Shown in pieces: positions 28,901 to 61,229 of a stretch of DNA of 64,000 nt. Under the pieces are notes generated by a model that worked only from the letters and a program-made list of their open reading frames with translations, was not told the origin of the DNA and did no database searches. Source of the stretch: Raja brachyura (Eukaryota); assembly GCA_963514005.1 (NCBI GenBank), contig OY740798.1, forward strand, positions 51,584,001-51,648,000, read 5' to 3'. Both the position numbers and the translations under genes were made by a program. The first letter of the stretch is position 1; each line of letters begins with the position of its first letter.

Positions 28901-29609
28901 GCATAATCTGAGCTGCCTTTCTGAGATGACCAGCATGCCATTTTGTGATGCAAGGAGACGCGCACTGTACAGGATGCTCCTGCACATTCTGAACCACCGT
29001 GCCTTCGTCTCCCGTCCTGACTCACCATGGAGGACGGTGTTACCATCCGAAGGCGGCGGGGGGCCCCAGTGGGGGTCCTTCTATAAGGGAGTTGTACCCC
29101 TTTATATTGGGGACCTGGGGTGGAGAGTGTTGCATGGAGCGGTGGTTTGTAATAAACTTTTGAGTCGGTTCACGGGCTCGTCTGCCGCATGTAGTTTCTG
29201 CGGAGAGGAGGAGACCGTATTCCATGTGTATATGGAGTGTGAGAGGTTACTGCCCCTGTATCAATATCTGAAGGGGTTGTTCCTCAAGTTCTGGCTGCAT
29301 TTTAGCCCCACAATCCTGGTGTTTGGACACAAGGCAGGGAGTGGGGAGAGCCGAGTGTGGGGGGGGGACTTACCTGTCGGTTTGCTCCTCGGCCTGGCCA
29401 AGATGGCCATTCGTGGGTTCAGGCAGCGGGCGGTCGACGGTCAGGCGAGAGTCGGCTGCCTGCCCCTCTTTCGGGCCTACGTCCGTGCACGTGTGTCCCT
29501 GGAGAGGGAACACGCGGTGTTCACGGGGACTGTGGGGGCCTTTCGTCAGCGCTGGTCGCCGCGTGGGGTTGAGGCGATTATAAATGATTGTACTGTTGTA
29601 CTACAATGA
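25905..29609 (+). pseudogene. Tx1 ORF2: APE endonuclease, RT, C-terminal zinc finger (frameshift ~27915)
   Basis: TLNLNG, QETH, GGDFN, SRIDRFY, SDH; KNWRPVSLL, LDQEKAFDRV, GVRQGCP, YADD; CSFCGEEETVFHVYMEC. Confidence 0.93.
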
Positions 29610-32865: not shown

Positions 32866-34039
32866 AGCGGGCTCACATATAAAGAGTGTGAACGGGTAAG
32901 CGTTGGTCGGCGTGGACTTTGAGGACCGAAGGGCCTGTTTCCATGCTGTATCCACTCACGCACACTTGTTTCCATTCCAGACATTCAAGTCCCACCACGA
33001 ACAGTAGCTCAGAACTGCTGCAGCTCAATATCCTGGACCCTGCCCCCACTTCCATCCCCACCTCCCCCCCAAACTACAGCCTCAGTATCAAACTGCAGAT
33101 ACTGTAATCCTGAACAATGCACAAAGTGCATCTGCAACTTAGGTCAGAAGACGTTTCGGGTCGAGAACGTCACTTGTCCATTCCATCCACAGATGCTGCC
33201 TGACCCGCTGAGTTCCTCCAGCACATTTGATTTGTGTACAATATTCTACAGAATGTAACTCATTCTAAATTACTAGTGTATTCTACTGATCAGATTGGTT
33301 CATTCCCTCTGGAATTAGCACAAGGTTTCAGGTCGGAACCTTTCTTCAGACTAATTGCAGTAGTTGGGTGAAAGCTTGAAAAGAAAGTTGGGGTGCGACA
33401 AAGTCTGGCAAGTGATAGGTGGATACAAGTGTGGGAGGGGAGTGAGTGGCAGATGGGTGGAGTGGGTGACATAGGTCCAAGCCACCCCCTCCCCAGCTAC
33501 TCACCCCTGCAACCGCAGGAGATGCAACACCTGGCACCTCCCATTCTCACACTGACCTTTCTGTCCTGGGCCTGCTCCATTGTCAGAGTGTCGACCAACA
33601 CAAATTGGAGATACAACGCGTCATATTTTGCTTGAGCAGCTTACACTCCAGTGGTATGAATATTGATTTCTTCAAATAACCCTTGCTTTCCCTCTCACCC
33701 CGTCCCTCCCCCACCCTGGTTCTTTGATTAGTTTCACTGTCCTGATTAAATTTACTGATTGTATTCCTCGTTGTCACCTTCCCCTCAGTGAACAATGAAC
33801 AATGAACCATTCTACATTTCCTTATCATCTGCTTTCATCTGTCATTTCCTCACCTTACCCTTCCATATCTCTCCCCTGACTCTCAGACTGAAGAAGGGTC
33901 GACACCCAACACGTCACCAACATGTTCTCTCCAGAGATGCTGCCTTTCCCGCTGAATTACTCCAGCATTTTTTTTGTGTCTATCTTCAGTGTATACCAGC
34001 ATCTGCAGTTCCTTCCTACAAATATAAGTGGAGAGGTCA

Positions 34040-34390
34040 TAGACACATAGAACATAGAAACATAGAAAAATAGGTGCAGGAGTAGGCCATTCGGCCCTTC
34101 GAGCCAGCACTGCCATTCAATATAATCATAGCTGATCATCTAAAATTAGTGCCCCGTTCCTGCTTTATCCCCATCATCCTCGATTCCTTTAGCCCTTAGA
34201 GCTAAATCTAACTGTTTATTGAAAACATCCAGTGAATTGGCCTCCACTGGCTCCTGTGGCAGAGAATTCCACAGATTCACAACTCTCTGGGTGAAAAGGT
34301 TTTTCCTCATCTCAGTCCTACATGGCCTACCCCTTACTCTTAAACTGTGAGCCCTAGTTCTGGAATTCCCCATCTTAGGGAACATGTGCA
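34040..34390 (-). mobile_element. CR1 3' fragment (followed by a + strand CR1 fragment ~34387-34660)
   Basis: (ACATAGAA)n reverse tail; MFPKMGNSRTRAHSLRV...FTQRVVNLWNSLP. Confidence 0.85.
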
Positions 34391-35319
34391 GTTACATAAG
34401 ATAACGGTGAGGCAGCATTTACAACATTGTGTTCAGTTCTCGGCACCATTTTATAGGAAAGATGGTGTCAAGCTGGAATGGGCATGGAGAAGATTTACAA
34501 GGACATTGCCGGGACTCGACGGTGTGAGCTATAGGGACAGGTTAAACATGCTGAAACTCTATTCCTTGGAGCGCTGGAGGATGAGGGGAGAATTTATAGA
34601 GGTGTATATATCCATGAGGCATAGGTCGGGTAGATGCACGGAGCAGGGTATCGAGGACAATAGACAATAGGTGCAGGAGTAGGCCATTCGGCCCTTCGAG
34701 CCAGCCATTCAATGTGATCATGGTTGATCATCCACAATCAGTACCCCGTTCCTGCCTTCTCCCCATATCACCTGACTCCCCTATTTTTAAGAGCCCTATC
34801 TAGCTCTCTCTTGAAAGCATCCAGAGAACCTGCCTCCACCGCCCTATGAGACTCACCACTCTCTGTGAGAAAAAATGTTTCCTTGTCTCTGTTCTGAATG
34901 GCTTACTCCTTATTCTTAAACTGTGGCATCTGGTTCTGGACTCCACCAACATCGGGAGCATGTTTCCTGCCTCTAGCGTGTTGAAGCCCTTAATAATCTT
35001 ATATATTTCAATGAGATCTCCTCTCATCCTCCTAAACTCCAGTGTATAAGTCAGCTGTTCCATTCTCTCAGCATATGACAGTCCCGCCATCCCAGGAATT
35101 AACCTTGTAAACCTCCGCTGCACTCCCTCAATAGCAAGAATGTCCTTCCCCAAATTAGGGGACCAAAACTGCACACAATACTCCAGGTGTGGTCTCACTA
35201 TGGCTCTGTACAACTGCAGAAGGACCTCTTTGCTCCTATAGTCGATTCCTCTTGTTATAATGGCCAACATGCCATTCGCTTTATTCACTGCCTGCTGTAC
35301 CTGCATGCTTACTTTCATA

Positions 35320-36257
35320 ACAACAGATAGTCCTCCGCCAGTTTCGTCACCTCCAACGTGACCCCTCCACTCGCCACATCTTCCCATCTCCCCCCCTGTC
35401 TGCCTTCCGCAAAGACCGCTCCCTCCGCAACTCCCTCGTCAATTCTTCCCTTCCCTCCCGCTCCACTCCTTCCCCGGGCACTTTCCCTTGCAACCGCAAG
35501 AGATGCCACACTTGTCCCTTCACCTCCCCCATCCAATCCTTTTAGGGACCCAAGCAGTCATTCCAAGTCCGACAGAGGTTCACCTGCACCTCCTCCAACC
35601 TCATCTACTGCATCCGTTGCTCCAGATGCCAGCTGATCTACATCGGTGAGACCAAGCGTAGGCTGGGCGATCGTTTCGCCGAACACCTCCGCTCGGTCCG
35701 CAATAACCAACCCGACCTCCCGGTGGCTCAGCACTTCAACTCCCCCTCCCACTCCGTATCCGACCTCTCGGTCCTGGGCCTCCTCCACGGCCAGAGTGAT
35801 CAACACCGCAAGTTGGAGGAACAGCACCTCATATTCCGCTTGGGGAGTCTGCATCCTCTGGGCTTAAACATTGAATTTTCTCAATTCTGTTAACCCAGAC
35901 TGCCTCCCCCCCACCTCTCCCTCAGCCCTCTGGCCCTGACATTCCTTCTCCATCTCCCCCCCCCCCCCCCCCAGTCGCACTAGCTTCTCATTTTCACACC
36001 ACTAACAGCTTACAATGGCCTGCTTCCTTTATCACCAATACTTTTTTGCATATCTTTCACTCATTGTTCCTTATCTCTCCACATCACTGTTTATATCTCT
36101 TGTTTCCCTGATCCCTGACCAGTCTGAAGAAGGGTCTCGACCCGAAACGTCGCCTATCTCCTTCGCTCCTTAGATGCTGCTGCACCCGCTGAGTTTCTCC
36201 AGCTTTTTGTGTAACCCTCGATTCTCCAGCATCTGCAGTTCCTTCTTTAACACTAAC
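35320..36257 (+). mobile_element. Penelope-like element 3' part (Cys linker, GIY-YIG endonuclease, pLTR) with 14-bp TSD
   Basis: CNRKRCHTC and NLIYCIRCSRCQLIYIGETKRRLGDRFAEH. TGCTTACTTTCATA duplicated at 35306-35319 and 36258-36271. Confidence 0.88.
36124..36151 (+). ncRNA. Minimal hammerhead-ribozyme-like core in Penelope pLTR
   Basis: CTGAAGA-A-GGG(TCTCGA)CCC-GAAAC-GTC. Helix I is weak. Confidence 0.55.
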
Positions 36258-37031
36258 TGCTTACTTTCATAGACTGATGTACAAGGACCCCCAGATCCCG
36301 TTGTACTTCCCCTTTTCCCAACTTGATACCATTTAGATAGTAATCTGCCTTCCTGTTTTTGCTACCAAAGTGGATTATCTCACATTTATCCGCATAAAAC
36401 TTCATCTGCCATGCATCTGCCCACTCCCCCAACCTGTCCAAGTCACCCTGCATTCTCATAGCATCCTCCTCACAGTTCACTGCCACCCAGCTTTGTGTCA
36501 TCTGCAAATTTGCTAATGTTACTTTGAATCCCTTCATCCAAATCACTGATATATTGTAAATAGCTGCGGACCCAACAACGAGCCTTGCGGTACGCCACTA
36601 GTCACTGCCTGCAATTCTGAACCAGAGGACATAGGTTTAAGGTGAAGGGGAAAAAAAATAATAGGAATCAGAGCTGTCGGAGGAGGTCGTTGAGGCAGGG
36701 ACTATCGTTACGTGTAAGAAACAATTAGACAGGTACATGGATCGGACAAGTTTGGAGGGATTTGGGCCAAATACAGGCAGGTGGGATTAGTGAAGCTGGG
36801 ACATGTTAGCCGGTGTGGACAAGTTGGGCCGAAATGTCTGTTTTCACACTGACTCTATGCTGAGTTCCTCCAGCACTGTGTGTCAGTGTGCATCTGTGTT
36901 ATTGAACAGGGCCACCTCGATAGATGTCTAGTCCCACCGCTGTAATAAATAAATACATATTCAAAGCCAGCGGATGTACAGCCGGGAAACGACGCGAGGA
37001 CACGAAAACGAAAGTAATTCATTTCTGCAAG

Positions 37032-37173
37032 ATGGTGGCGGGGCAGGGCGCTGGCTGCGGCCGGACGGGGACAGTCTTGGGGCCGCGGGGCTGCTGCTCG
37101 TCTCCGGGAACCCGGCTGCCCACCCTGGTACTGGCGCTGGTGCTGGCGCTGGTGTGGCTGCTACCCGCGGCAG
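37032..37173 (+). CDS. NCR3LG1: B7-H6-like exon 1 (signal peptide), copy 1
   Basis: AAGATGG Kozak; MVAGQGAG...LPTLVLALVLALVWLLPAA; phase-1 donor G|GTAAC; CpG-rich. Confidence 0.75.
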
Positions 37174-39804
37174 GTAACGGCCAATGCCCACCCCCTCTCT
37201 CTATCCCTCTCTCTCCAATGCCCTCTCCACCTCTCTCTCTATCTCCACCTCTCTCTCTATCTCTCCCTCAAACACTCTTTCCCCTGCAAGTTGCACTTTC
37301 CAATCAACCGTAAAAAGTCTATGGCATCTCATTATTCTTTGCAATGCTGACAATGGGCGCGCTCTTTGCAGAGTGCAGTCCTTGCAGTTTCAAAAGTGAC
37401 CATTGAAGCTCAGAGAGCCGCGCCCAAAAACTTTGTCCGCAAACGTTTTGCGGGTTTTATAATGTAATGTCATTATCGTTTGATTTGTTTTTGCTAAGTA
37501 GATATATTTTGTGAAGGAGTGGAGATATTTTAGACGTGTGAAAGAATACTAAAATAACTAAGTACGACTAAAACAGGGCGATTTGTCACGAGTTACTCCA
37601 GCATTTTGCGTCAGTTTTCGACCCTGTTGACACCAAAGATTATGTTTGGTTGACACTGGCCTAAACTGGTCCTCCTGGAGAAACACTGAATTGCAGATGT
37701 TGCTTTACCGAGGAAAGACACAGAGTGTTTGAGTACATAGATCCACAGATACATAGACAAGAGGTGCAGGAGTAGGCCATTCGTCCCTTCAAGCCAGCAC
37801 CGCCATTCAATGTGATCATGGCTGATCATCCACAATCAGTACCCCGTTCCTGCCTTCACCCATATCCCCTGATTCCGCTAGCCCTAAAAGCTCTGTCTAA
37901 CTCTCTTTTGAATGCATCCAGTGAATCAGCCTCTACTGCCATCTGAGGCAGAGAATTACACAAATTCACAACTCTCTGGGTGAAAGGTTTTTCCGCATAT
38001 CAGTTCTAAATGGCCTACCCCATATTCTTAAACTGTGGCCCCTGGTTCTGGATTCCCCCAACATCGAGAACATGTTTCCTGCATCTAGTGAGTCCAATCC
38101 CATAATAATTTTATATGTTTCTAATAACATCCCCTCTCATCCTTCTAAATTCCAGTGAGTACAAGCCCAGTCGCTCCATTCTTTCATCATAAATCAGTCA
38201 CGCCATCCCGGGAATTAACCTTGTGAACCTACACTGCACTCCCTCAAGAGCAAGAATGTCATTCCTCAAATTAGGAGATCAAAACTGCACTCATTACTCC
38301 AGGTGTCTCCAGGACCCTGACTGAGAGTCAGGTAACAGCAAACTAGAGATATGGAAGGGTAAGGTGTGAAAACGACAGATCAAAGCAGATGTTGATAAGG
38401 GAATGTAGAATGTCTACCTTTCCCCTTACTCTCAGACTGAAGAAGGGTCTATACCTTTCCTTTAGCCCTTATAGCTAAATCTAACTCTTTCTTGAAAATA
38501 TCCAGTGAATTGGCCTCCACTGGCTTCTGTGGCAGATAATTCCACAGATTCACAACTCTCTGGGTGAAAACGTTTTCCTCATCTCAGTCCTAAATGGCCT
38601 ACCCCTTACTCTTAAACCGTGAGCCCAGGTTCTGGACTTCCCCAACATAGGGAACATGTGCAGTTGTATAAGATAACAGTGAGGCAGCATTTACAACATT
38701 GTGTTCAGTTCTGGGCACCATGTTATAGGAAAGATGGTGTCAAGCTGGAATGGGCATGGAGAAGATTTACGAGGACGAGGTTAATTCCCGAGATGGCGGG
38801 ACTGTCATGTGCTGAGAGAATGGAGTACAATGGGCTTGTACACTCTGGAGTTTAGAAGGATGAGAGGGGATCTCATTGGAACATATAAGATTGCTAAGGG
38901 CTTGGACATGCTAGAGGCTGGAAACATGCTCCCGATGTTGGGGGAGTCCAGAACCAGGGGCCAGTTTAAGAATAAGGAGTAAGCCATTTAGAACAGAGTT
39001 GAGGAAACACTTTTTCTCACAGAGTGGTGAGTCTGTGGAATTCTCTGCCTCAGAGGGCGGTGGAGGCAGGTTCTCTGGATACTTTCAAGAGAGAGCTAGA
39101 TAGGGCTCTTAAAAATAGAGGAGTCAGGTGTATGGGGAGAAGGCAGGAACGGGGTACTGATTGAGGATGATCAGCCATGATCACATTGAATGGCGGTGCT
39201 GGCTCGAAGGGCCGGATGGCCTCCTCCTGCACCTATTGTCTATTGATGTTGCCAGGACTCAACGGTGTGAGCTATAGGGACAGGTTGAAACAGGCTGGAA
39301 CTCTATTCCTTGGAGCGCAGGAGGATGAGGGGTGAACTTATAGCGGTGTATATAACCATGAGGCATAGGTCGGGTAGGTGTTCAGAGCAGGGGTTTAGAG
39401 GACATATGTTTAAGGTGAAGGGGAAAAAAAATAATAGGAATCAGAGCTGTCGGAGGAGGTCGTTGAGGCAGGGACTATCGTTACGTGTAAGAAACAATTA
39501 GACAGGTACATGGATCGGACAAGTTTGGAGGGATTTGGGCCAAATACAGGCAGGTGGGATTAGTGAAGCTGGGACATGTTAGCCGGTGTGGACAAGTTGG
39601 GCCGAAATGTCTGTTTTCACACTGACTCTATGCTGAGTTCCTCCAGCACTGTGTGTCAGTGTGCATCTGTGTTATTGAACAGGGCCACCTCGATAGATGT
39701 CTAGTCCCACCGCTGTAATAAATAAATACATATTCAAAGCCAGCGGATGTACAGCCGGGAAACGACGCGAGGACACGAAAACGAAAGTAATTCATTTCTG
39801 CAAG

Positions 39805-39946
39805 ATGGTGGCGGGGCAGGGCGCTGGCTGCGGCCGGACGGGGACAGTCTTGGGGCCGCGGGGCTGCTGCTCGTCTCCGGGAACCCGGCTGCCCACCCTG
39901 GTACTGGCGCTGGTGCTGGCGCTGGTGTGGCTGCTACCCGCGGCAG
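39805..39946 (+). CDS. NCR3LG1: B7-H6-like exon 1, copy 2
   Basis: Identical to copy 1 (+2773). Confidence 0.7.
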
Positions 39947-42577
39947 GTAACGGCCAATGCCCACCCCCTCTCTCTATCCCTCTCTCTCCAATGCCCTCTC
40001 CACCTCTCTCTCTATCTCCACCTCTCTCTCTATCTCTCCCTCAAACACTCTTTCCCCTGCAAGTTGCACTTTCCAATCAACCGTAAAAAGTCTATGGCAT
40101 CTCATTATTCTTTGCAATGCTGACAATGGGCGCGCTCTTTGCAGAGTGCAGTCCTTGCAGTTTCAAAAGTGACCATTGAAGCTCAGAGAGCCGCGCCCAA
40201 AAACTTTGTCCGCAAACGTTTTGCGGGTTTTATAATGTAATGTCATTATCGTTTGATTTGTTTTTGCTAAGTAGATATATTTTGTGAAGGAGTGGAGATA
40301 TTTTAGACGTGTGAAAGAATACTAAAATAACTAAGTACGACTAAAACAGGGCGATTTGTCACGAGTTACTCCAGCATTTTGCGTCAGTTTTCGACCCTGT
40401 TGACACCAAAGATTATGTTTGGTTGACACTGGCCTAAACTGGTCCTCCTGGAGAAACACTGAATTGCAGATGTTGCTTTACCGAGGAAAGACACAGAGTG
40501 TTTGAGTACATAGATCCACAGATACATAGACAAGAGGTGCAGGAGTAGGCCATTCGTCCCTTCAAGCCAGCACCGCCATTCAATGTGATCATGGCTGATC
40601 ATCCACAATCAGTACCCCGTTCCTGCCTTCACCCATATCCCCTGATTCCGCTAGCCCTAAAAGCTCTGTCTAACTCTCTTTTGAATGCATCCAGTGAATC
40701 AGCCTCTACTGCCATCTGAGGCAGAGAATTACACAAATTCACAACTCTCTGGGTGAAAGGTTTTTCCGCATATCAGTTCTAAATGGCCTACCCCATATTC
40801 TTAAACTGTGGCCCCTGGTTCTGGATTCCCCCAACATCGAGAACATGTTTCCTGCATCTAGTGAGTCCAATCCCATAATAATTTTATATGTTTCTAATAA
40901 CATCCCCTCTCATCCTTCTAAATTCCAGTGAGTACAAGCCCAGTCGCTCCATTCTTTCATCATAAATCAGTCACGCCATCCCGGGAATTAACCTTGTGAA
41001 CCTACACTGCACTCCCTCAAGAGCAAGAATGTCATTCCTCAAATTAGGAGATCAAAACTGCACTCATTACTCCAGGTGTCTCCAGGACCCTGACTGAGAG
41101 TCAGGTAACAGCAAACTAGAGATATGGAAGGGTAAGGTGTGAAAACGACAGATCAAAGCAGATGTTGATAAGGGAATGTAGAATGTCTACCTTTCCCCTT
41201 ACTCTCAGACTGAAGAAGGGTCTATACCTTTCCTTTAGCCCTTATAGCTAAATCTAACTCTTTCTTGAAAATATCCAGTGAATTGGCCTCCACTGGCTTC
41301 TGTGGCAGATAATTCCACAGATTCACAACTCTCTGGGTGAAAACGTTTTCCTCATCTCAGTCCTAAATGGCCTACCCCTTACTCTTAAACCGTGAGCCCA
41401 GGTTCTGGACTTCCCCAACATAGGGAACATGTGCAGTTGTATAAGATAACAGTGAGGCAGCATTTACAACATTGTGTTCAGTTCTGGGCACCATGTTATA
41501 GGAAAGATGGTGTCAAGCTGGAATGGGCATGGAGAAGATTTACGAGGACGAGGTTAATTCCCGAGATGGCGGGACTGTCATGTGCTGAGAGAATGGAGTA
41601 CAATGGGCTTGTACACTCTGGAGTTTAGAAGGATGAGAGGGGATCTCATTGGAACATATAAGATTGCTAAGGGCTTGGACATGCTAGAGGCTGGAAACAT
41701 GCTCCCGATGTTGGGGGAGTCCAGAACCAGGGGCCAGTTTAAGAATAAGGAGTAAGCCATTTAGAACAGAGTTGAGGAAACACTTTTTCTCACAGAGTGG
41801 TGAGTCTGTGGAATTCTCTGCCTCAGAGGGCGGTGGAGGCAGGTTCTCTGGATACTTTCAAGAGAGAGCTAGATAGGGCTCTTAAAAATAGAGGAGTCAG
41901 GTGTATGGGGAGAAGGCAGGAACGGGGTACTGATTGAGGATGATCAGCCATGATCACATTGAATGGCGGTGCTGGCTCGAAGGGCCGGATGGCCTCCTCC
42001 TGCACCTATTGTCTATTGATGTTGCCAGGACTCAACGGTGTGAGCTATAGGGACAGGTTGAAACAGGCTGGAACTCTATTCCTTGGAGCGCAGGAGGATG
42101 AGGGGTGAACTTATAGCGGTGTATATAACCATGAGGCATAGGTCGGGTAGGTGTTCAGAGCAGGGGTTTAGAGGACATATGTTTAAGGTGAAGGGGAAAA
42201 AAAATAATAGGAATCAGAGCTGTCGGAGGAGGTCGTTGAGGCAGGGACTATCGTTACGTGTAAGAAACAATTAGACAGGTACATGGATCGGACAAGTTTG
42301 GAGGGATTTGGGCCAAATACAGGCAGGTGGGATTAGTGAAGCTGGGACATGTTAGCCGGTGTGGACAAGTTGGGCCGAAATGTCTGTTTTCACACTGACT
42401 CTATGCTGAGTTCCTCCAGCACTGTGTGTCAGTGTGCATCTGTGTTATTGAACAGGGCCACCTCGATAGATGTCTAGTCCCACCGCTGTAATAAATAAAT
42501 ACATATTCAAAGCCAGCGGATGTACAGCCGGGAAACGACGCGAGGACACGAAAACGAAAGTAATTCATTTCTGCAAG

Positions 42578-42719
42578 ATGGTGGCGGGGCAGGGCGCTGG
42601 CTGCGGCCGGACGGGGACAGTCTTGGGGCCGCGGGGCTGCTGCTCGTCTCCGGGAACCCGGCTGCCCACCCTGGTACTGGCGCTGGTGCTGGCGCTGGTG
42701 TGGCTGCTACCCGCGGCAG
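42578..42719 (+). CDS. NCR3LG1: B7-H6-like exon 1, copy 3
   Basis: Identical to copy 1 (+5546). Confidence 0.7.
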
Positions 42720-45350
42720 GTAACGGCCAATGCCCACCCCCTCTCTCTATCCCTCTCTCTCCAATGCCCTCTCCACCTCTCTCTCTATCTCCACCTCTCT
42801 CTCTATCTCTCCCTCAAACACTCTTTCCCCTGCAAGTTGCACTTTCCAATCAACCGTAAAAAGTCTATGGCATCTCATTATTCTTTGCAATGCTGACAAT
42901 GGGCGCGCTCTTTGCAGAGTGCAGTCCTTGCAGTTTCAAAAGTGACCATTGAAGCTCAGAGAGCCGCGCCCAAAAACTTTGTCCGCAAACGTTTTGCGGG
43001 TTTTATAATGTAATGTCATTATCGTTTGATTTGTTTTTGCTAAGTAGATATATTTTGTGAAGGAGTGGAGATATTTTAGACGTGTGAAAGAATACTAAAA
43101 TAACTAAGTACGACTAAAACAGGGCGATTTGTCACGAGTTACTCCAGCATTTTGCGTCAGTTTTCGACCCTGTTGACACCAAAGATTATGTTTGGTTGAC
43201 ACTGGCCTAAACTGGTCCTCCTGGAGAAACACTGAATTGCAGATGTTGCTTTACCGAGGAAAGACACAGAGTGTTTGAGTACATAGATCCACAGATACAT
43301 AGACAAGAGGTGCAGGAGTAGGCCATTCGTCCCTTCAAGCCAGCACCGCCATTCAATGTGATCATGGCTGATCATCCACAATCAGTACCCCGTTCCTGCC
43401 TTCACCCATATCCCCTGATTCCGCTAGCCCTAAAAGCTCTGTCTAACTCTCTTTTGAATGCATCCAGTGAATCAGCCTCTACTGCCATCTGAGGCAGAGA
43501 ATTACACAAATTCACAACTCTCTGGGTGAAAGGTTTTTCCGCATATCAGTTCTAAATGGCCTACCCCATATTCTTAAACTGTGGCCCCTGGTTCTGGATT
43601 CCCCCAACATCGAGAACATGTTTCCTGCATCTAGTGAGTCCAATCCCATAATAATTTTATATGTTTCTAATAACATCCCCTCTCATCCTTCTAAATTCCA
43701 GTGAGTACAAGCCCAGTCGCTCCATTCTTTCATCATAAATCAGTCACGCCATCCCGGGAATTAACCTTGTGAACCTACACTGCACTCCCTCAAGAGCAAG
43801 AATGTCATTCCTCAAATTAGGAGATCAAAACTGCACTCATTACTCCAGGTGTCTCCAGGACCCTGACTGAGAGTCAGGTAACAGCAAACTAGAGATATGG
43901 AAGGGTAAGGTGTGAAAACGACAGATCAAAGCAGATGTTGATAAGGGAATGTAGAATGTCTACCTTTCCCCTTACTCTCAGACTGAAGAAGGGTCTATAC
44001 CTTTCCTTTAGCCCTTATAGCTAAATCTAACTCTTTCTTGAAAATATCCAGTGAATTGGCCTCCACTGGCTTCTGTGGCAGATAATTCCACAGATTCACA
44101 ACTCTCTGGGTGAAAACGTTTTCCTCATCTCAGTCCTAAATGGCCTACCCCTTACTCTTAAACCGTGAGCCCAGGTTCTGGACTTCCCCAACATAGGGAA
44201 CATGTGCAGTTGTATAAGATAACAGTGAGGCAGCATTTACAACATTGTGTTCAGTTCTGGGCACCATGTTATAGGAAAGATGGTGTCAAGCTGGAATGGG
44301 CATGGAGAAGATTTACGAGGACGAGGTTAATTCCCGAGATGGCGGGACTGTCATGTGCTGAGAGAATGGAGTACAATGGGCTTGTACACTCTGGAGTTTA
44401 GAAGGATGAGAGGGGATCTCATTGGAACATATAAGATTGCTAAGGGCTTGGACATGCTAGAGGCTGGAAACATGCTCCCGATGTTGGGGGAGTCCAGAAC
44501 CAGGGGCCAGTTTAAGAATAAGGAGTAAGCCATTTAGAACAGAGTTGAGGAAACACTTTTTCTCACAGAGTGGTGAGTCTGTGGAATTCTCTGCCTCAGA
44601 GGGCGGTGGAGGCAGGTTCTCTGGATACTTTCAAGAGAGAGCTAGATAGGGCTCTTAAAAATAGAGGAGTCAGGTGTATGGGGAGAAGGCAGGAACGGGG
44701 TACTGATTGAGGATGATCAGCCATGATCACATTGAATGGCGGTGCTGGCTCGAAGGGCCGGATGGCCTCCTCCTGCACCTATTGTCTATTGATGTTGCCA
44801 GGACTCAACGGTGTGAGCTATAGGGACAGGTTGAAACAGGCTGGAACTCTATTCCTTGGAGCGCAGGAGGATGAGGGGTGAACTTATAGCGGTGTATATA
44901 ACCATGAGGCATAGGTCGGGTAGGTGTTCAGAGCAGGGGTTTAGAGGACATATGTTTAAGGTGAAGGGGAAAAAAAATAATAGGAATCAGAGCTGTCGGA
45001 GGAGGTCGTTGAGGCAGGGACTATCGTTACGTGTAAGAAACAATTAGACAGGTACATGGATCGGACAAGTTTGGAGGGATTTGGGCCAAATACAGGCAGG
45101 TGGGATTAGTGAAGCTGGGACATGTTAGCCGGTGTGGACAAGTTGGGCCGAAATGTCTGTTTTCACACTGACTCTATGCTGAGTTCCTCCAGCACTGTGT
45201 GTCAGTGTGCATCTGTGTTATTGAACAGGGCCACCTCGATAGATGTCTAGTCCCACCGCTGTAATAAATAAATACATATTCAAAGCCAGCGGATGTACAG
45301 CCGGGAAACGACGCGAGGACACGAAAACGAAAGTAATTCATTTCTGCAAG

Positions 45351-45492
45351 ATGGTGGCGGGGCAGGGCGCTGGCTGCGGCCGGACGGGGACAGTCTTGGG
45401 GCCGCGGGGCTGCTGCTCGTCTCCGGGAACCCGGCTGCCCACCCTGGTACTGGCGCTGGTGCTGGCGCTGGTGTGGCTGCTACCCGCGGCAG
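45351..45492 (+). CDS. NCR3LG1: B7-H6-like exon 1, copy 4
   Basis: Identical to copy 1 (+8319). Confidence 0.7.
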
Positions 45493-48123
45493 GTAACGGC
45501 CAATGCCCACCCCCTCTCTCTATCCCTCTCTCTCCAATGCCCTCTCCACCTCTCTCTCTATCTCCACCTCTCTCTCTATCTCTCCCTCAAACACTCTTTC
45601 CCCTGCAAGTTGCACTTTCCAATCAACCGTAAAAAGTCTATGGCATCTCATTATTCTTTGCAATGCTGACAATGGGCGCGCTCTTTGCAGAGTGCAGTCC
45701 TTGCAGTTTCAAAAGTGACCATTGAAGCTCAGAGAGCCGCGCCCAAAAACTTTGTCCGCAAACGTTTTGCGGGTTTTATAATGTAATGTCATTATCGTTT
45801 GATTTGTTTTTGCTAAGTAGATATATTTTGTGAAGGAGTGGAGATATTTTAGACGTGTGAAAGAATACTAAAATAACTAAGTACGACTAAAACAGGGCGA
45901 TTTGTCACGAGTTACTCCAGCATTTTGCGTCAGTTTTCGACCCTGTTGACACCAAAGATTATGTTTGGTTGACACTGGCCTAAACTGGTCCTCCTGGAGA
46001 AACACTGAATTGCAGATGTTGCTTTACCGAGGAAAGACACAGAGTGTTTGAGTACATAGATCCACAGATACATAGACAAGAGGTGCAGGAGTAGGCCATT
46101 CGTCCCTTCAAGCCAGCACCGCCATTCAATGTGATCATGGCTGATCATCCACAATCAGTACCCCGTTCCTGCCTTCACCCATATCCCCTGATTCCGCTAG
46201 CCCTAAAAGCTCTGTCTAACTCTCTTTTGAATGCATCCAGTGAATCAGCCTCTACTGCCATCTGAGGCAGAGAATTACACAAATTCACAACTCTCTGGGT
46301 GAAAGGTTTTTCCGCATATCAGTTCTAAATGGCCTACCCCATATTCTTAAACTGTGGCCCCTGGTTCTGGATTCCCCCAACATCGAGAACATGTTTCCTG
46401 CATCTAGTGAGTCCAATCCCATAATAATTTTATATGTTTCTAATAACATCCCCTCTCATCCTTCTAAATTCCAGTGAGTACAAGCCCAGTCACTCCATTC
46501 TTTCATCATAAATCAGTCACGCCATCCCGGGAATTAACCTTGTGAACCTACACTGCACTCCCTCAAGAGCAAGAATGTCATTCCTCAAATTAGGAGATCA
46601 AAACTGCACTCATTACTCCAGGTGTCTCCAGGACCCTGACTGAGAGTCAGGTAACAGCAAACTAGAGATATGGAAGGGTAAGGTGTGAAAACGACAGATC
46701 AAAGCAGATGTTGATAAGGGAATGTAGAATGTCTACCTTTCCCCTTACTCTCAGACTGAAGAAGGGTCTATACCTTTCCTTTAGCCCTTATAGCTAAATC
46801 TAACTCTTTCTTGAAAATATCCAGTGAATTGGCCTCCACTGGCTTCTGTGGCAGATAATTCCACAGATTCACAACTCTCTGGGTGAAAACGTTTTCCTCA
46901 TCTCAGTCCTAAATGGCCTACCCCTTACTCTTAAACCGTGAGCCCAGGTTCTGGACTTCCCCAACATAGGGAACATGTGCAGTTGTATAAGATAACAGTG
47001 AGGCAGCATTTACAACATTGTGTTCAGTTCTGGGCACCATGTTATAGGAAAGATGGTGTCAAGCTGGAATGGGCATGGAGAAGATTTACGAGGACGAGGT
47101 TAATTCCCGAGATGGCGGGACTGTCATGTGCTGAGAGAATGGAGTACAATGGGCTTGTACACTCTGGAGTTTAGAAGGATGAGAGGGGATCTCATTGGAA
47201 CATATAAGATTGCTAAGGGCTTGGACATGCTAGAGGCTGGAAACATGCTCCCGATGTTGGGGGAGTCCAGAACCAGGGGCCAGTTTAAGAATAAGGAGTA
47301 AGCCATTTAGAACAGAGTTGAGGAAACACTTTTTCTCACAGAGTGGTGAGTCTGTGGAATTCTCTGCCTCAGAGGGCGGTGGAGGCAGGTTCTCTGGATA
47401 CTTTCAAGAGAGAGCTAGATAGGGCTCTTAAAAATAGAGGAGTCAGGTGTATGGGGAGAAGGCAGGAACGGGGTACTGATTGAGGATGATCAGCCATGAT
47501 CACATTGAATGGCGGTGCTGGCTCGAAGGGCCGGATGGCCTCCTCCTGCACCTATTGTCTATTGATGTTGCCAGGACTCAACGGTGTGAGCTATAGGGAC
47601 AGGTTGAAACAGGCTGGAACTCTATTCCTTGGAGCGCAGGAGGATGAGGGGTGAACTTATAGCGGTGTATATAACCATGAGGCATAGGTCGGGTAGGTGT
47701 TCAGAGCAGGGGTTTAGAGGACATATGTTTAAGGTGAAGGGGAAAAAAAATAATAGGAATCAGAGCTGTCGGAGGAGGTCGTTGAGGCAGGGACTATCGT
47801 TACGTGTAAGAAACAATTAGACAGGTACATGGATCGGACAAGTTTGGAGGGATTTGGGCCAAATACAGGCAGGTGGGATTAGTGAAGCTGGGACATGTTA
47901 GCCGGTGTGGACAAGTTGGGCCGAAATGTCTGTTTTCACACTGACTCTATGCTGAGTTCCTCCAGCACTGTGTGTCAGTGTGCATCTGTGTTATTGAACA
48001 GGGCCACCTCGATAGATGTCTAGTCCCACCGCTGTAATAAATAAATACATATTCAAAGCCAGCGGATGTACAGCCGGGAAACGACGCGAGGACACGAAAA
48101 CGAAAGTAATTCATTTCTGCAAG

Positions 48124-48265
48124 ATGGTGGCGGGGCAGGGCGCTGGCTGCGGCCGGACGGGGACAGTCTTGGGGCCGCGGGGCTGCTGCTCGTCTCCGGG
48201 AACCCGGCTGCCCACCCTGGTACTGGCGCTGGTGCTGGCGCTGGTGTGGCTGCTACCCGCGGCAG
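48124..48265 (+). CDS. NCR3LG1: B7-H6-like exon 1 (signal peptide), copy 5 (proximal)
   Basis: 142 nt (47 codons + 1). Joins in frame to the IgV exon as ...LLPAA-D-SLDMN. Confidence 0.82.
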
Positions 48266-49514
48266 GTAACGGCCAATGCCCACCCCCTCTCTCTATCCCT
48301 CTCTCTCCAATGCCCTCTCCACCTCTCTCTCTATCTCCACCTCTCTCTCTATCTCTCCCTCAAACACTCTTTCCCCTGCAAGTTGCACTTTCCAATCAAC
48401 CGTAAAAAGTCTATGGCATCTCATTATTCTTTGCAATGCTGACAATGGGCGCGCTCTTTGCAGAGTGCAGTCCTTGCAGTTTCAAAAGTGACCATTGAAG
48501 CTCAGAGAGCCGCGCCCAAAAACTTTGTCCGCAAACGTTTTGCGGGTTTTATAATGTAATGTCATTATCGTTTGATTTGTTTTTGCTAAGTAGATATATT
48601 TTGTGAAGGAGTGGAGATATTTTAGACGTGTGAAAGAATACTAAAATAACTAAGTACGACTAAAACAGGGCGATTTGTCACGAGTTACTCCAGCATTTTG
48701 CGTCAGTTTTCGACCCTGTTGACACCAAAGGAGACACAACCCAAAACGTCACCCAAAACTTCTCTCCAGAGATGCTGCCTGTCTCGCTGAGTTGCTCCAG
48801 CTTTTTGTATCTATAGTGTAAACCAGCATCTGCACTTCCTTCCTACAAATCTCTGGAGACCAAGGATGGGTAATGTTTTGGGTTGGGACCCTTCTTCAGA
48901 CGTGGGGGGTTGAGAAAATGCTGAAAGAGAGGAGGTGCAAGCCAAATCAGATGGTTAGTCAAAGGCCAGAGATGAAAAGACAAAAGGTGTGAGACAAGTG
49001 GAGGTGGGGAAGAGTGGAGGGGTGGGGGAGAAGAGAGGGGGGTATGGGGGATTGGTTACTTACAATTGAAGAATTCGATGTTCCTATGATGTGCTGTTTC
49101 TCCAGCTAGCATTTGGACCAACTCGTCCATGCCGATCATGATGCCCCATCTACGCTGGACCCAATTGCCTGCCTTTGGACCATATCGTTCCAAACCTTAC
49201 TTATCCACATACCTGTCCATGGATATGGTATGTCAGTATAACTGATATACTCAGCTACTCCAGCAATCTGATTCTATCTTCATTGAAAGTGGCAGTAGTG
49301 GTTTGTTACATTACCACAGAGAAGCATCGTGGCGTAGGTCTAGAGTTGGGCACAGAGAAGCAAGACTGAGTAAGGTATCTCTTCCTGAAGAGCATTAGTC
49401 AACCATTTGTGCTTTCCTGACATCATTGTAGCTTTTGCAGTCAGTATATCCTTTTCCAACTTTCTGGTCATTAACCCTGTTTCAGTTCCTCATTTGCAAT
49501 GACGGCTTAGTTAT

Positions 49515-50485: not shown

Positions 50486-51019
50486 TAAAGGTGGGGGGGG
50501 GGGGGGGGGTGGTGGATTGGCAGATATGTGGACGAAGGCTGGAGGTAAAAGCAAGACAAAAGCCAGGCCATTGGTGGACAGGGAAATTGGAGATTTCAAT
50601 TTCCATTGAACAACGGTCTCGACCCAAAACGTTGTCTATCCATGTTCTCCAGAGATGCTGTCTGACAGGCTGAGTAACCATATAACCATATAACAATTAC
50701 AGCACGGAAACAGGCCATCTCGGCCCATCAAGTCCGTGCCGAACAACTTTTTTCCCTTAGTCCCACCTGCCTGCACTCATGCCAAAAAATATGGAACGCT
50801 TCATGAATTTGCTTGTCATCCTTGTACTCCAGCACTTTGTGGGAGTTTTTTTTAATAAACCAGCATCTGCAGTTCCTTGAGTCTCAATGTTCATACCGCT
50901 GGGTTGCAAGTTATCCAAGTGCTCGTCCTCCAGTTTGCCAGCGGCTGCTGCTGGCTTTGTTCCCAGATAAACCTTATCCTGCACCACCTGTGGAGTCTGT
51001 TGCATGTCCACTTATGATC

Positions 51020-52740: not shown

Positions 52741-54805
52741 TTTGCAGCGCTGTCGAGCGCCTGAGCCGCTTCTTCCCTTCTTCCCTTCCCCCCTCTTCCT
52801 CCCATCTCCCCACTCCACTCTTCATCCTCTTCTCCACTCACTCCCCCACTCCCCTCACATCACCTTCTCCCCCTCTCCCTCCCTTCTCCAACCCCCCTCC
52901 CCCCCCCACGTTCCCCGACGGCTCCCATTTGTGGACCCAGCCTGTGACCAGCGTTCCCCCGCACACTATCCCACACACGCTAGGGACAATTTATACAAAC
53001 CTTTGGAGTGCGGGAGGAAACCCAAACCCTAACTCTAGGTTGATAGGTTTGGTATTTATAAATTGTCCCTAGCGTGTGTGGGATAGTGTGCGGGGAGTCG
53101 TTGGTCGGTGCGGCCATGGTGGGCCGAAGGGCATTGTCTCTCTGAACTAAATGGAGCCCCAGGGGTTGGACTCGAACCCCTAATATTCTGCATGGGAACT
53201 AAACTGTTGGTCACGAGTATCCCAGATGCAGATCTCTCTTCCAATGGTCTCTCCAAACCCCTAGACGCAGCGGTCTTCTCAACTGGGCACAGGCAATGTT
53301 GTCAATGTGCCACCCACCTGCTCCGGCCATTCAGCCTAAAACCCATCACCCATTTTGAACCAATGCGAGGGGTGGGGGGGGGGGCAGGGGATGTTGGGGG
53401 TGTTTTTCCCAAAGTCTGCATTGATCCCATAGTCAATGTTACTAAAACAGATGATGTGGAGTAGACCTTTGCAGTACAATTAGTGGGATCTAGCTGGGTC
53501 CACAAATGGGGGGCATCGGGGAAAGTGTGGGGGTGGGGGGGTTGGAAAATGAGGGTAGGAGATGGGGAGAAGGGGATGTGAGTGGAGGGGGGGAGTGAGG
53601 AACAGTGGAGCGGGGAGGAGGAAGAGGGGGGAAGGGAAGAAGGGGGGAGAGAAGGGAGAAGGGTTGGGGGGGGAGTGGAGAAGGATGGGCGGGAGGGGGT
53701 GGAGGGGAGAGGGGAGTTCAGTCTACACTCACTGAATCTATCCCTGTGAAAAGTTAGAGACGGTGATCTGGATCTGGAAGCGGACCAATATAAAATAAAA
53801 CTGAATGATTCAGACATCTTTTCATTTACACAATTGATTTTATTGTATTAATTTAATTATATTAATGTTTAAAATCCATGCATTGAAGGAAGAATATTTC
53901 ACAGCCCATCTGTGGACCCTAACCCCAACCCTAGCCTGAACCCTAACCGGTTGTGACCCGCTGGACAGCAAACGTCATCGTGTGACACTGCGCATGACAT
54001 GATGAGACACACAAATGTCGCCCCTGGATTTTGAACATTCCAAACACCTGGGGCGACAGGGAGACACCGCGCGGCACGACCCGACCCGACCACGACGCGA
54101 CAAACTCTTTTCAGAAAATGTCGCCCAAGTGGGACAGGATCTTAAATCCCTCGCCCCACGAGAGGGGGAGAGAAACTGCAAAGCCACCTGCCCACGTTTG
54201 GTCCATATCACTCCAAACCTGATCTATCCATGTGCCTGTCTCTATCCCTGTCTTTCTACCTCAGGGCTCGACATTAACGGTTGCCCGGGTGCCAATGGCT
54301 GGTGACACAGGAGATACTGGTTTACACCGAAGGTTGACACCAAAAACTGGTGTAACTCAGCGGGTCAGGCAGCATCTCTGGAGAAAAGGAATAAGTGACG
54401 TTTCTGGTGGCCGGCGATGGCTGTGGTGGGGGGTGACGGAGGGTCGCAGTGAATGACGGACCCCGCACTGCAGCGGCGGTGACGGCGGCTCCACCTCCTG
54501 CACCCCGCCCGCCCTGGTAGCGGCCGCTGCGTGCCACTCCGCCAATGGCGATAATCGCTTTTGAAACAAATCCTCCCGCACGCCGAGGCCGGGAGGAGGG
54601 AGGGAGGAAGGAAGGAGGAGACTTCCGCCGTCTGAAGCATCTGCACCTCTCGGCCCCACACCTTCCTCTTGGCTAACGGAGAAGGGGAGGCGGTGACGAG
54701 GAAATCCCTAACTGCCTCCCCCTTTGGCGGTGGCACTGGTACAGGGACGGCCAAGGCAGCGAGGAGCGTTGACCTTCCTTCCTCCCCAACTCCTCCCTCT
54801 CTCTG

Positions 54806-54854
<49 letters not shown>

Positions 54855-55189
54855 CTCTCTCTCCCCCCTCCATCCCCCCCCTTATCCTGGGACCCCTCCT
54901 CTCCATCACACACTGATCCCAATTCCCGGAGAGAAGGAATGGGCGACTTTTCAGGTCGAGACCTTTCTTCAGACGTCTGAAGACCTGAAACGTCAACATT
55001 CTTCTCACCAGAGATGCTGCCTGTCCCGCTGTGTTACTCCAGCATTTTGTGTCTACAATGGAAACCAACAAATACCATACCTGTTAATTTCTATGTGCGC
55101 ACTGTTGATGGCTTGATTATAATCATGCCTTGGTGGGCAGAAGGGCCCGTTTCCGTGCTTGATCTCTAAACTAAAGCAATTAGACTCAA

Positions 55190-55852: not shown

Positions 55853-56188
55853 ATTCGTTGGATATGAACATTTTTGCCAGTCCGAAGAAAGTATTTTTGA
55901 ACGATTCGGTTTGGTTGGAATGTAAATTTACTGGGTTTAAAGCACCGCTTGACTTGACAAATGTAGGTGTGCGGTGGTTGTTCGGACCACGGAATGAAGA
56001 AATCTATGTTTTTGAAATGGGAGAACATAGGACCAAGGAACATGGCATACAAATATCCGGTGAACTATCCATAGGAGATGCTTCACTTCTGCTTAAGAAT
56101 GTCCAAGTGGGCAACGAAGGGAATTATACTTGCATTGTGTTTGTCACTCCTGAAAAGGCAGAAAAGAGTTCGGATCTGCGAGTTTTAG
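55853..56188 (+). CDS. NCR3LG1: B7-H6-like exon 2, IgV domain
   Basis: Acceptor TTTCCATTTAG, donor G|GTAAAA, 336 nt, phase 1-1. LNDSVWLEC...GVRW...IYVFEMGEH...GDASLLL...EGNYTCIVFVTPEKA parallels human B7-H6 as recalled (LNDNVTIFC, GITW, GDASLRL, YRCEVVVTPLKA). Confidence 0.9.
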
Positions 56189-56238
56189 GTAAAAGACCGT
56201 CAACATTACCCGGGGTGATTTGCACTGTTATTACTGGA

Positions 56239-57474
56239 GGTAGACAAAAGTGCTGGAGAAACTCAGCGGGTGCAGCCGCATCTATGGAGCGAACGAAATA
56301 GGCAATGTTTCTGGCCAAAACCCTTCTTCAGACTGATGTAGGGGGGGGGGGGGGGAGACGGGAGAAAGGAACAGGAGGAGCCAGAGGGCTGAGGGAGAGC
56401 TGAGAAGGGGAGGAGACAGCAAGGGCTACCGGAAATTGAAGAATGGGGTGCAAACTGCCCAAGCGGAATACGAGGTGCTGCTCCTCCAATTTCCGGTGGT
56501 GCTCACTCTGGCCATGGAGGAGGCCCAGGACAGAAATGTCGGATTCGGAATGGGAGAAGTACTGAGCCACCGGGAGATCAGGTTGGTTAATGTGGACCGA
56601 GCTGAGGTGTTCGGCGAAACGATCGCCAGGCCAAGCTTGGTCTCACAGATGTAGATCAGCTGACATCTGGAGCAGCGGATGCAATAGATGAGGTTGGAGG
56701 AGGTGCAGGTGAACCTGTGTCGCACCTGGAACGACTGCTTGGCTCCTTGAATAGAGTCGAGGGGGGAGGTAAAGCGACAAGTGTAGCATCTCTTGCGGTT
56801 GCAAGGGAAAGTGCCCGGGGAGGGGTGGTGCGGGAGGGAAGGAAAGAATTGACCATGGAGTTGCGGAGGGAGCGGTCTTTGCGGAAAGCAGACAGGGGGG
56901 GAGATGGGAAGATGTGGTGAGTGGTGGGGTCACGTTGGAGGTGGCGAAAATGACAGGAGGACTATTTGTTGTATGTGACGGCTAGTGGGGTGAAAGGTGA
57001 GGACTAGGAGGACTCTGGCCTTGTTGCGAGTGCGGGTATGGGGAGGGGGAGCAGTGTTGCGGGGTATTGAAGAGACCCTAGTGAGAGCCTCATCTATAGT
57101 AGGGGAGGGGAACCCCCGTACCCTGATGAATGAGGACATTTCCAATGCCCTGGTGTGGAACACCTCACCCTGGGAGCAGATGCGGCGTTGACAGAGAAAT
57201 TGGGAGTAGGGGATGGAGTCCTTACAGGAAGCAGGGTGGGAAGAAGAGTAGTCTAGATAGCCATGGGAGTCAGTAGTTTGTGGAGGAGCCCTCTGGGTCC
57301 TCCTCTTCCTTTATCCTTTCTTCTCCCCCCCCACCTTACATCAGTCTGAAGAAGGGCTTCGGCCCGAAACGTTGCCTATTTCCTTCGCTCCATAGATGCT
57401 GCTGCACCCGCTGAGTTTCTCCAGCATTTTTGTCTACCTTCGATTTTCCAGCATCTGCGGTTCCTTCTTAAAAC
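56239..57474 (-). mobile_element. Penelope-like element with inverted pLTR ends and 14-bp TSD, in intron 2
   Basis: GIY-YIG NLIYCIRCSRCQLIYICET on the minus strand. pLTR at 56239-~56420 (-) and ~57290-57474 (+). CTGTTATTACTGGA duplicated at 56225-56238 and 57475-57488. Confidence 0.88.
57346..57373 (+). ncRNA. Minimal hammerhead-ribozyme-like core in Penelope pLTR
   Basis: CTGAAGA-A-GGGC(TTCG)GCCC-GAAAC-GTT; perfect helix II with a UUCG loop. Confidence 0.55.
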
Positions 57475-57514
57475 CTGTTATTACTGGATCTTGGTGGTAA
57501 AAATGGCTTACACC

Positions 57515-58783: not shown

Positions 58784-58948
58784 AGTGTAGATGGGGCACT
58801 TTGGTCATTGTGGGCAAATTGGGCTGAAGGGTCTGCTTCTGTGCTGAATGCTGTGACCCTTAGACTTAAGAGTCTTATAATGTGACAGTTATTTCTGGCA
58901 ATACACTGCATGGCAACTAACCCGAGGTTGCACTTGTCTTTAATACAG

Positions 58949-59269
58949 CTCAGCCGAAGCTGCATTTATCCACACAACATGTTACCATTGAGACTGGCGA
59001 GGAGAGGCTGGTGACGTGTGATGCTACGGGATTTTACCCTCAGGCACTTAACATCTACTGGGAAAAAGTATCCAAGGATAAGACTGAGAAACTAAGCCAC
59101 GATGTCTTCATCACACCTCCAGTTCATAATCCAGATAAAACCTTTAATGTCTCCAGTAGAATGAGAATTGAACCAACTCTAGTTGATAATGGCAATGTGT
59201 ACAAGTGTGTCGTGGAGCATCCAGCAGATGATAACCGTCGCTCGCTCGAGTTGAGACTCACAGTCAAAG
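58949..59269 (+). CDS. NCR3LG1: B7-H6-like exon 3, IgC1 domain
   Basis: Acceptor TCTTTAATACAG, donor G|GTATG, 321 nt, phase 1-1. CDATGFYPQALNIYWEK...DKTFNVSS...YKCVVEH is the C1-set YxCxVxH pattern (human B7-H6 recalled as CESSGFYPEAINITWEK, DGTFNVTS). Confidence 0.92.
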
Positions 59270-61115: not shown

Positions 61116-61229
61116 AACCTGTGGAATATTCGTCAACAGGGGCTATTGTTGCAGTTGTAGTTATTGCATTACTTCTATTCACAATACTTGCCTGTGGACT
61201 CTGGGTTTACTTCGTGAAATTGAGATCAG
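61116..61229 (+). CDS. NCR3LG1: B7-H6-like exon 4, transmembrane segment
   Basis: Acceptor TTTTACATTCCAG, donor G|GTAAT, 114 nt, phase 1-1. EPVEYSSTGAIVAVVVIALLLFTILACGLWVYFVKLRS. Confidence 0.85.

Follow-up and report, generated by a model that had tools for sequence, protein, structure and literature searches.

A near-identical tandem array of the first coding exon in front of a single B7H6-like gene body in the assembled genome of the skate Raja brachyura

Why should the first exon of a putative immune-ligand gene stand five times in front of a gene body that is present only once? This question is raised by a window of 64,000 nucleotides of Raja brachyura DNA, the whole stretch analysed here and the source of all coordinates below. 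A first-pass annotation had proposed that a unit of 2773 bp recurs about 4.37 times at this locus, with some two substitutions over 12 kb. Self-comparison of the window at an offset of 2773 agrees on both counts: positions 36624-48730 form a gap-free tandem array of 12,107 bp, or 4.366 units with a period of 2773 bp, in which the register is unbroken, indels are absent and exactly two internal mismatches occur. Both array edges are abrupt: outside them, similarity at this offset ceases altogether. TRF, whose periods go no higher than 500, left the array unreported, and the short TRF repeats inside the array return at the exact spacing of 2773 bp. Runs of N in the window were kept as they stand.

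The layout can be written as X(YX)4, that is, five X and four Y modules:

36624..48730, + strand: whole array X(YX)4, from the offset self-comparison
36624-37638, 39397-40411, 42170-43184, 44943-45957 and 47716-48730, + strand: X copies 1-5
37639-39396, 40412-42169, 43185-44942 and 45958-47715, + strand: Y copies 1-4
37638/37639, again at 40411/2, 43184/5 and 45957/8, + strand: X-Y joint
about 36624-36870: 3' part of a LINE-derived element, in X copy 1
about 37753-38224 and 38775-39243: arms of an inverted repeat within Y, ~83% complementary and ~550 nt apart
36634: substitution, G in copy 1 and T in copies 2-5, 10 bp from the left array edge
46492, + strand: substitution within Y, A in copy 4 only and G in copies 1-3

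Each X module (about 1,014 bp) comprises a LINE tail, a unique CpG-rich stretch, exon 1 and 465 bp of intron 1. The Y module (1,758 bp) is transposon-derived apart from about its first 115 bp, as judged by local blastn against the window, and the same comparison shows that its end runs on, in element register, into the LINE tail that opens X. The two arms of its inverted repeat are copies of one transposon family. Past 37638 the units go into Y, and past 48730 the last X goes into unrelated flank; the X-Y joint is the sole non-homologous novel adjacency of the array. An Rfam search of 33000-40500 returned zero families, and a protein search with the open reading frame that crosses the X-Y joint gave zero matches, a result that is not evidence of absence. 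The excess of 0.37 unit is not accounted for by one simple duplication. Copies as alike as these would also be expected from over-expansion or polishing of a repeat during assembly.

The exon carried by X begins with the ATG at 37032 and ends at 37173; it is 142 nt long, ends in phase 1 and is followed by a GT donor at 37174. Its five copies, predicted earlier to be identical in ATG, signal peptide and phase-1 donor, are 100% identical:

37032-37173, 39805-39946, 42578-42719, 45351-45492 and 48124-48265, + strand: exon 1 copies

Exon 1 encodes 47 codons plus 1 nt, all of it signal peptide, and corresponds to residues 1-48 of the skate orthologues P0001 and P0171. The orthologues of Amblyraja radiata (LOC116984368), Leucoraja erinacea (LOC129705966) and Rhinoraja longicauda (LOC144602191) carry the same leader at their N-terminus, and all three read ...LLPAAD/SLDMNIF..., which is exactly the predicted junction of exons 1 and 2. 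The end of exon 1 lies at the border between leader and mature protein, as the orthologues show. Judged by its sequence, the array exon genuinely opens the coding region of the gene, with orthologue N-termini and junction in agreement; the same N-termini reject the view of exon 1 as a chance open reading frame.

Downstream of the array lies the remainder of the gene that falls within the window:

55853..56188, + strand: exon 2, IgV, 336 nt, phase 1 to 1; Pfam V-set; orthologue residues 48-160
58949..59269, + strand: exon 3, IgC1, 321 nt, phase 1 to 1; Pfam C1-set, splice sites and orthologues
61116..61229, + strand: exon 4, stalk and transmembrane segment, 114 nt, phase 1 to 1; splice donor, open reading frame and orthologue match

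Exon 2 is entered in phase 1 through a strong polypyrimidine/AG acceptor at 55853, so that the split codon G/AT reads Asp. All five identical donors are in the phase that fits this shared exon, and the in-frame splice to 55853 suggested for every copy is borne out by matching phases and by the identical junction in the orthologues. The acceptor of exon 4 was placed by eye, from the open reading frame at 61100 and the EPVEYSS of the orthologues. As the first-pass annotation had it, all copies precede a single exon set: the window holds one IgV, one IgC1 and one transmembrane exon, and local BLAST found no further exon-1-like, IgV or IgC1 sequence elsewhere in it. Exons were searched one by one and not as a joined spliced model, and the local window database used for tblastn with the orthologues left out 50701-50900.

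The B7-H6-like identity proposed for the gene also held. Pfam assigns a V-set domain to exon 2 (E 6e-8) and a C1-set domain to exon 3 (E 4e-12), giving the order signal peptide, V-set, C1-set and transmembrane segment, with phase-1 introns, that characterises B7-H6/NCR3LG1. Among PDB entries the IgV exon matches human NCR3LG1 (B7-H6) best (E 2.3e-10), by a narrow margin over CD276 (6.9e-9). In the full-library search, skate, ray and chimaera proteins of the B7H6 group, some of them named NCR3LG1-like by NCBI, rank highest; in both match rankings B7-H6 comes ahead of the other B7 and Ig-superfamily proteins. A nurse-shark protein deposited as B7H6, a name that is the depositor's, shares 57% identity with the IgV exon (E 2e-37), and in tblastn the IgV and IgC1 domains of that protein are colinear with the window. 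On these comparisons the skate gene and the nurse-shark one are orthologous. Against the skate orthologues, the leader, IgV, IgC1 and transmembrane exons are colinear, with ectodomain exons (leader, IgV, IgC1) 63-90% identical. Two IgV-IgC1 pairs are present in Amblyraja and Leucoraja, against one in the R. brachyura gene and in Rhinoraja; the orthologues have a long Ig-rich tail, whereas in the R. brachyura gene the remainder falls beyond the window.

What else is multiplied with exon 1? Each X contains about 160 bp of unique CpG-rich DNA upstream of the exon, in which a TATA-like run and an ISRE-like motif occur:

37004..37015, + strand: ISRE/IRF-like motif GAAAACGAAAGT, 17-28 nt upstream of the ATG
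39777, 42550, 45323 and 48096, + strand: further copies of GAAAACGAAAGT, one per unit

In a motif scan, matches to GAAAACGAAAGT were confined to the units within the 64 kb, against a chance expectation of 0.48 for the window as a whole. The CpG-rich flanks described earlier are present, if only modestly so: CpG o/e is 0.75-0.89 and GC 0.54-0.68 over about 36800-37200. The promoter is probably located within the repeat unit. The transcription start site may lie outside the unit, and the AAG directly 5' of the ATG could serve as a weak acceptor, in which case aberrant mRNAs carrying two or more leader exons would be formed. Since the exon 1 copies are identical, CAGE or 5'RACE would be unable to tell them apart.

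The flank upstream of the array bears on how the units were assembled. Two features stand there:

34184..34658, + strand: 5' half of a LINE-derived element, upstream of the array
34659..36621: composite transposon insertion of about 1.96 kb that splits the LINE-derived element, from sequence comparison

X copy 1 carries on the element of 34184..34658 in register, and the right end of the insertion lies 2-13 bp from the left array edge. The upstream half resembles Y at two places (93.5% over 321 bp with Y positions 819-1138; 90.3% over 144 bp with 1611-1754). Because Y is unlike the upstream flank and the Y-X junction is continuous within one LINE-derived element, the X-Y and Y-X adjacencies are not a plain copy-and-paste of flanking sequence. 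Downstream of the array, local BLAST against the window found nothing that resembles the unique start of Y in diverged form, so a symmetrical model with an insertion at both edges is unsupported. Non-allelic homologous recombination between two flanking transposon copies was rejected, there being no same-offset homology outside either edge.

We lean towards reading the locus as a macrosatellite-type amplification that is real and either young or recently homogenised, situated at the 5' end of skate B7H6. A first event would have joined the end of X to Y (37638/9), and unequal exchange between X copies would then have produced X(YX)4; the near-identity of the copies dates the last round of expansion or homogenisation to the very recent past. 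In all five copies the start codon, the leader and a consensus donor of the correct phase are preserved, so splicing to exon 2 is expected from any of them that initiates. Such a copy would use its own cap-proximal donor, and the copies downstream of it would be skipped as intron, giving the same mRNA and mature protein whichever copy initiates. The array would thus raise the number of start modules and lengthen intron 1, which could reach 18.7 kb where a single copy would give 7.6 kb, with the protein unchanged. Our guess is that the effect on expression is small or neutral, and silencing of the repeat is as possible as tuning of dose.

The most serious challenge to this reading is an error of copy number in the assembly: the animal may carry fewer X modules, perhaps one or two, or more, the assembler or polisher having made five near-identical units. 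We think this unlikely. In its favour are the lack of indels and the two substitutions in 12 kb, the fractional count of 4.37 units and the odd-length runs of N in the window (158 and 333). It is countered by the observation that Y is a copy of neither flank, so that at least X-Y-X needs real X-Y and Y-X adjacencies, by the base at 46492 that is specific to copy 4, and by the ability of current long reads to span an array of 12 kb. A doubtful but tenable alternative concerns age: the duplication could be older, held uniform by gene conversion (concerted evolution), and not a brand-new amplification. The 90-93% similar counterpart of the Y end that lies 5' of copy 1, in the register of X and severed by the 1.96-kb insertion, is consistent with this, as is array identity that starts 2-13 bp from the right end of the insertion, where conversion tracts stopping at heterology would be expected to end. 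However, unrelated copies of the same transposon families in the window are also 91-94% similar, and the upstream half could therefore be no more than an unrelated copy of the element that has recombined; moreover, the uniformity of the four Y units equals that of the X units, as one recent burst would predict.

Two further readings concern function, and both are improbable. In one, the array is a selected, copy-number-variable promoter array, its copies firing additively, that tunes the inducible dose of a putative NK ligand. No unit has lost the CpG-rich stretch, the ISRE-like motif, the start codon, the leader or the donor; among skates, both leader and junction are conserved, and human B7-H6 is an inducible ligand. 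Yet selection is needless for explaining a very young array, read-through from upstream can occlude downstream promoters, and silencing is common among CpG-rich promoters in tandem; D4Z4 arrays, when long, are heterochromatic and carry heavy methylation (PMC5687341). It would be a long shot for the whole chain to hold in which the array is real, its copy number varies among skates and several ISRE-bearing modules fire on interferon or stress signalling, making a heritable rheostat for a putative NK-cell activating ligand that leaves the protein untouched. The other reading, that a variable-first-exon cluster of the protocadherin or UGT1A type is being born here, was also raised by the first-pass annotation and has fared poorly. 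Several first exons with their own donors do lie upstream of shared exons, but they are identical, they encode only the signal peptide, and the mature protein begins near the border of exons 1 and 2. As exon 1 is nothing but cleaved leader, divergence of the copies could alter regulation and not the mature ligand, and we regard this reading as very improbable indeed.

If the amplification is real, it offers a clean experiment of nature in which an immune-ligand gene has had its start module alone multiplied (the ATG, leader and donor together with the probable promoter), and in which the effect of promoter copy number could be measured by comparing individuals that make the same protein. A further gain would be a dated snapshot, marked by one or two substitutions, of the birth and homogenisation of a kilobase-scale array at transposon boundaries in an elasmobranch. 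Should the array instead be an assembly error, it calls for caution in annotating 5' ends in the R. brachyura genome.

Among known systems, the closest likeness is to the macrosatellites (D4Z4/DUX4, DXZ4, RS447/USP17, RNU2 and TAF11-like), which consist of kilobase-scale, near-identical units with transposon fragments and a promoter per unit (PMC5687341). The skate array shares with them a head-to-tail unit of several kilobases (2773 bp) whose copies are almost uniform (2 differences in 12,107 bp), as well as transposon fragments and a CpG-rich, promoter-like part within the unit, and variable copy number would be expected of it as of them. Macrosatellites differ in carrying a whole open reading frame or RNA gene per unit, usually in 10-150 copies (PMC5687341), whereas the skate array has the first coding exon only, in 4.4 copies, with one common gene body downstream. 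With the clustered protocadherins and UGT1A it has in common tandem first exons that have their own 5' splice donors and could be joined in frame to common exons. In those clusters the first exons have diverged and encode a functional, variable part of the protein; the skate copies, in contrast, are 100% identical exons for a cleaved leader, so that only initiation can vary. In the kringle IV-2 repeat of LPA, internal in-frame exons are multiplied and all of them are included in the protein. The skate array resembles it as a uniform tandem repeat of kilobase scale that multiplies an exon module within one gene, but here the multiplied exon is the first, and one copy is usable per transcript.

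A self-comparison of the window, shifted by 2773 bp, recovered an array at 36624-48730 spanning 12,107 bp, or 4.366 units, in continuous register and with no indels, in which neighbouring units differ at two positions only (36634 and 46492). At this offset, similarity falls to chance immediately outside both array edges. The unbroken register, the two differing sites and the sharp edges show that the first-pass annotation, which had given the repeat period, its extent and about two substitutions, was correct in all its numbers. TRF reports no period above 500, and within the array it lists short repeats that recur with a 2773-bp spacing. The layout is X(YX)4, built from two modules, X and Y, with exon 1 of the B7-H6-like gene in each of the five X copies.

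Features of the array, its left flank and the downstream exons (window coordinates)
34184-34658: 5′ half of a LINE-derived element of the kind found in the unit, 93.5% and 90.3% like the corresponding parts of Y
34659-36621: 1.96-kb composite insertion separating this element half from copy-1 X
36624-37638: X module, copy 1 (1,014 bp)
X start to about 36870: 3′ part of a LINE-derived element
36634: substitution, G in copy 1 and T in copies 2-5, 10 bp from the left edge of the array
About 160 bp in X, between the LINE-derived part and exon 1: stretch unique within the window
Near 36945: TATA-like A/T-rich run, seen by eye
17-28 nt upstream of the exon 1 ATG: ISRE/IRF-like motif GAAAACGAAAGT
37032-37173: exon 1, in X (ATG at 37032, last base 37173, donor GT at 37174)
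465 bp after exon 1: intron segment closing X
37639-39396: Y module, copy 1 (1,758 bp), transposon debris except for its first ~115 bp
46492: substitution, A in copy 4 and G in copies 1-3
55853-56188: IgV exon (exon 2), Pfam V-set
58949-59269: IgC1 exon, Pfam C1-set
61116-61229: stalk/TM exon, after the IgC1 exon

Exons were searched singly rather than as a joined spliced model, and the species, a skate other than the three compared below, has no annotated protein in the protein database searched. The best solved-structure match of the IgV exon was human NCR3LG1 (B7-H6; E 2.3e-10), with CD276 second (6.9e-9), and the top match among 1.8 billion representative proteins was a 1,256-aa protein of Amblyraja radiata, with relatives in Leucoraja erinacea, Rhinoraja longicauda, sawfish, rays, sharks and Callorhinchus. 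The IgV exon is 57% identical to a nurse-shark protein deposited as B7H6 and 71% identical to the Rhinoraja protein. The structure match and the nurse-shark identity bear out the B7-H6-like assignment made at first pass. Decisive for the exon is that the leader encoded by the array's exon 1 is the N-terminus of all three skate proteins (Amblyraja, Leucoraja and Rhinoraja), which read ...LLPAAD/SLDMNIF... over the exon 1/exon 2 border, exactly as predicted from exon 1, the split codon G/AT and exon 2. In tblastn, orthologue residues 1-48 align to each of the five exon 1 copies and residues 48-160 to exon 2, with no residues missing between. The shared leader and matching junction in three skates thus identify the repeated exon as the genuine first coding exon of the B7H6 orthologue in this skate, encoding the signal peptide alone, and uphold the proposed in-frame splice to exon 2.

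The cartilaginous-fish orthologues (database proteins P0001 from Amblyraja, P0170 from Leucoraja, P0171 from Rhinoraja, P0175 and P0015) are 920-1,270 aa long. Past IgV-IgC1-TM runs a tail of ~800 aa in which C1-like Ig domains are numerous. Its conservation extends from skates to Callorhinchus, and its topology, with Ig domains beyond the TM segment, is odd. By eye, the tails contain repeated 15-16-aa acidic units, of which Rhinoraja has some eight or nine and Amblyraja three. Two tandem IgV-IgC1 pairs are present in Amblyraja (P0001) and Leucoraja (P0170), whereas the window (55853-59269) and Rhinoraja (P0171) have one, so the ectodomain module has likewise been duplicated within skates.

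The first-pass annotation had described an amplified promoter, and exon 1 copies with CpG-rich flanks. CpG enrichment around exon 1 was confirmed, but it is only moderate (o/e 0.75-0.89, GC up to 0.68), and we infer a putative promoter inside the unit from sequence motifs only. The GAAAACGAAAGT-type motif has five matches in the 64-kb window, all in units, against 0.48 expected by chance; the five count as one independent occurrence and the motif was picked after the sequence was seen. We treat it as a lead, not a result. Y holds an inverted pair of one transposon family, with arms of ~470 nt that are 83% complementary and lie ~550 nt apart. An Rfam search found no family in the unit or the left flank of the array.

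Because Y ends and X begins within a single continuous LINE-derived element, the Y-X joint is not a novel one. The X-Y joint at 37638/9 is the sole non-homologous one, as first proposed. Once X-Y-X exists, unequal exchange between X copies would yield X(YX)n. Upstream, copy-1 X resumes the element half at 34184-34658 in register, past the 1.96-kb insertion, and array identity sets in 2-13 bp beyond the right end of this insertion. Two histories fit: an older duplication whose X copies were kept uniform by conversion tracts halting at heterology, or a template switch or recombination event that joined two unrelated members of a young transposon subfamily. The similarity of about 93% does not prove the older duplication, since unrelated transposon copies in the window reach 91-94% identity. 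No diverged Y was found downstream of the array in the window. Neither history explains the abrupt right edge, which adjoins a SINE-like fragment, or the excess 0.37 unit. The array's 12.1 kb contain one or two singleton substitutions; if the rate is assumed to be near 10^-9 per site per year, the latest round of expansion or homogenisation took place on the order of 10^5 years ago.

The lack of any indels, the near-perfect identity among units and the fractional unit count are compatible with a misassembly, and an incorrect copy number is an unlikely but appreciable prospect; a single true copy, included in it, is considerably less probable. Two indirect points speak against a total artefact: Y is a copy of neither flank, so the assembly required reads with the X-Y and Y-X adjacencies, and one unit has a private base at 46492.

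Upstream, the gene borders on a transposon desert. No recognisable host gene was seen in the 36 kb upstream of the array (1-36600), which contains many LINE tails and long ORFs that look transposon-derived (4494-6305 with the RT motif YLDD, 27864-29609 with YADD). The 3′ part of a LINE is tandemly duplicated there, with a period of about 1,512 (12240-13649 and 13752-15159; 1.4 kb at 96.4% identity). Two N runs, one of 333 bases within 22137-23123 and one of 158 bases at 9538-9695, lie in or beside repeats, the former inside a G/A-rich low-complexity tract and the latter ~230 bp downstream of a tandem repeat of ~81-bp period (8949-9309).

The ATG, the leader and the consensus phase-1 donor G/GTAACG are retained in every copy. 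Because first exons lack an acceptor, a transcript from an upstream copy should use the cap-proximal donor, with the later copies spliced out; the length of intron 1 would be 7.6 kb for copy 5 and 18.7 kb for copy 1. Whichever copy is used, the mRNA and the mature protein would then be the same, and the array would alter the number of start modules. Initiation from several copies could add up; tandem CpG-rich promoters can instead undergo silencing, of which long D4Z4 arrays are an example (PMC5687341), and upstream read-through can occlude promoters downstream. The effect is most likely neutral or mild, and any effect could go in either direction; a selected ‘rheostat’ role seems improbable. 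Intron 1 also contains a second CpG-rich stretch (53900-54700; GC up to 0.67, o/e about 0.85) and a (CT)35 microsatellite (54793-54863). Both lie some 1-2 kb before exon 2, with flanks that look transposon-derived, and no leader-like ORF was seen.

The observation of the array is solid, and the gene itself is of interest. The array has the layout of a first-exon cluster, but fails its defining feature, diverged, protein-coding variable exons. The suggestion that it marks the birth of a Pcdh/UGT1A-type cluster is unlikely to hold, as the ligand itself would gain no diversity from divergent leaders. In sequence organisation the array resembles a short macrosatellite: like the RNU2 and TAF11-like macrosatellites (PMC5687341), it has kb-scale units that combine transposon pieces with a promoter-like part, and its copies are near-identical; it differs in that its unit holds only a first exon, with all copies predicted to feed one shared gene body.
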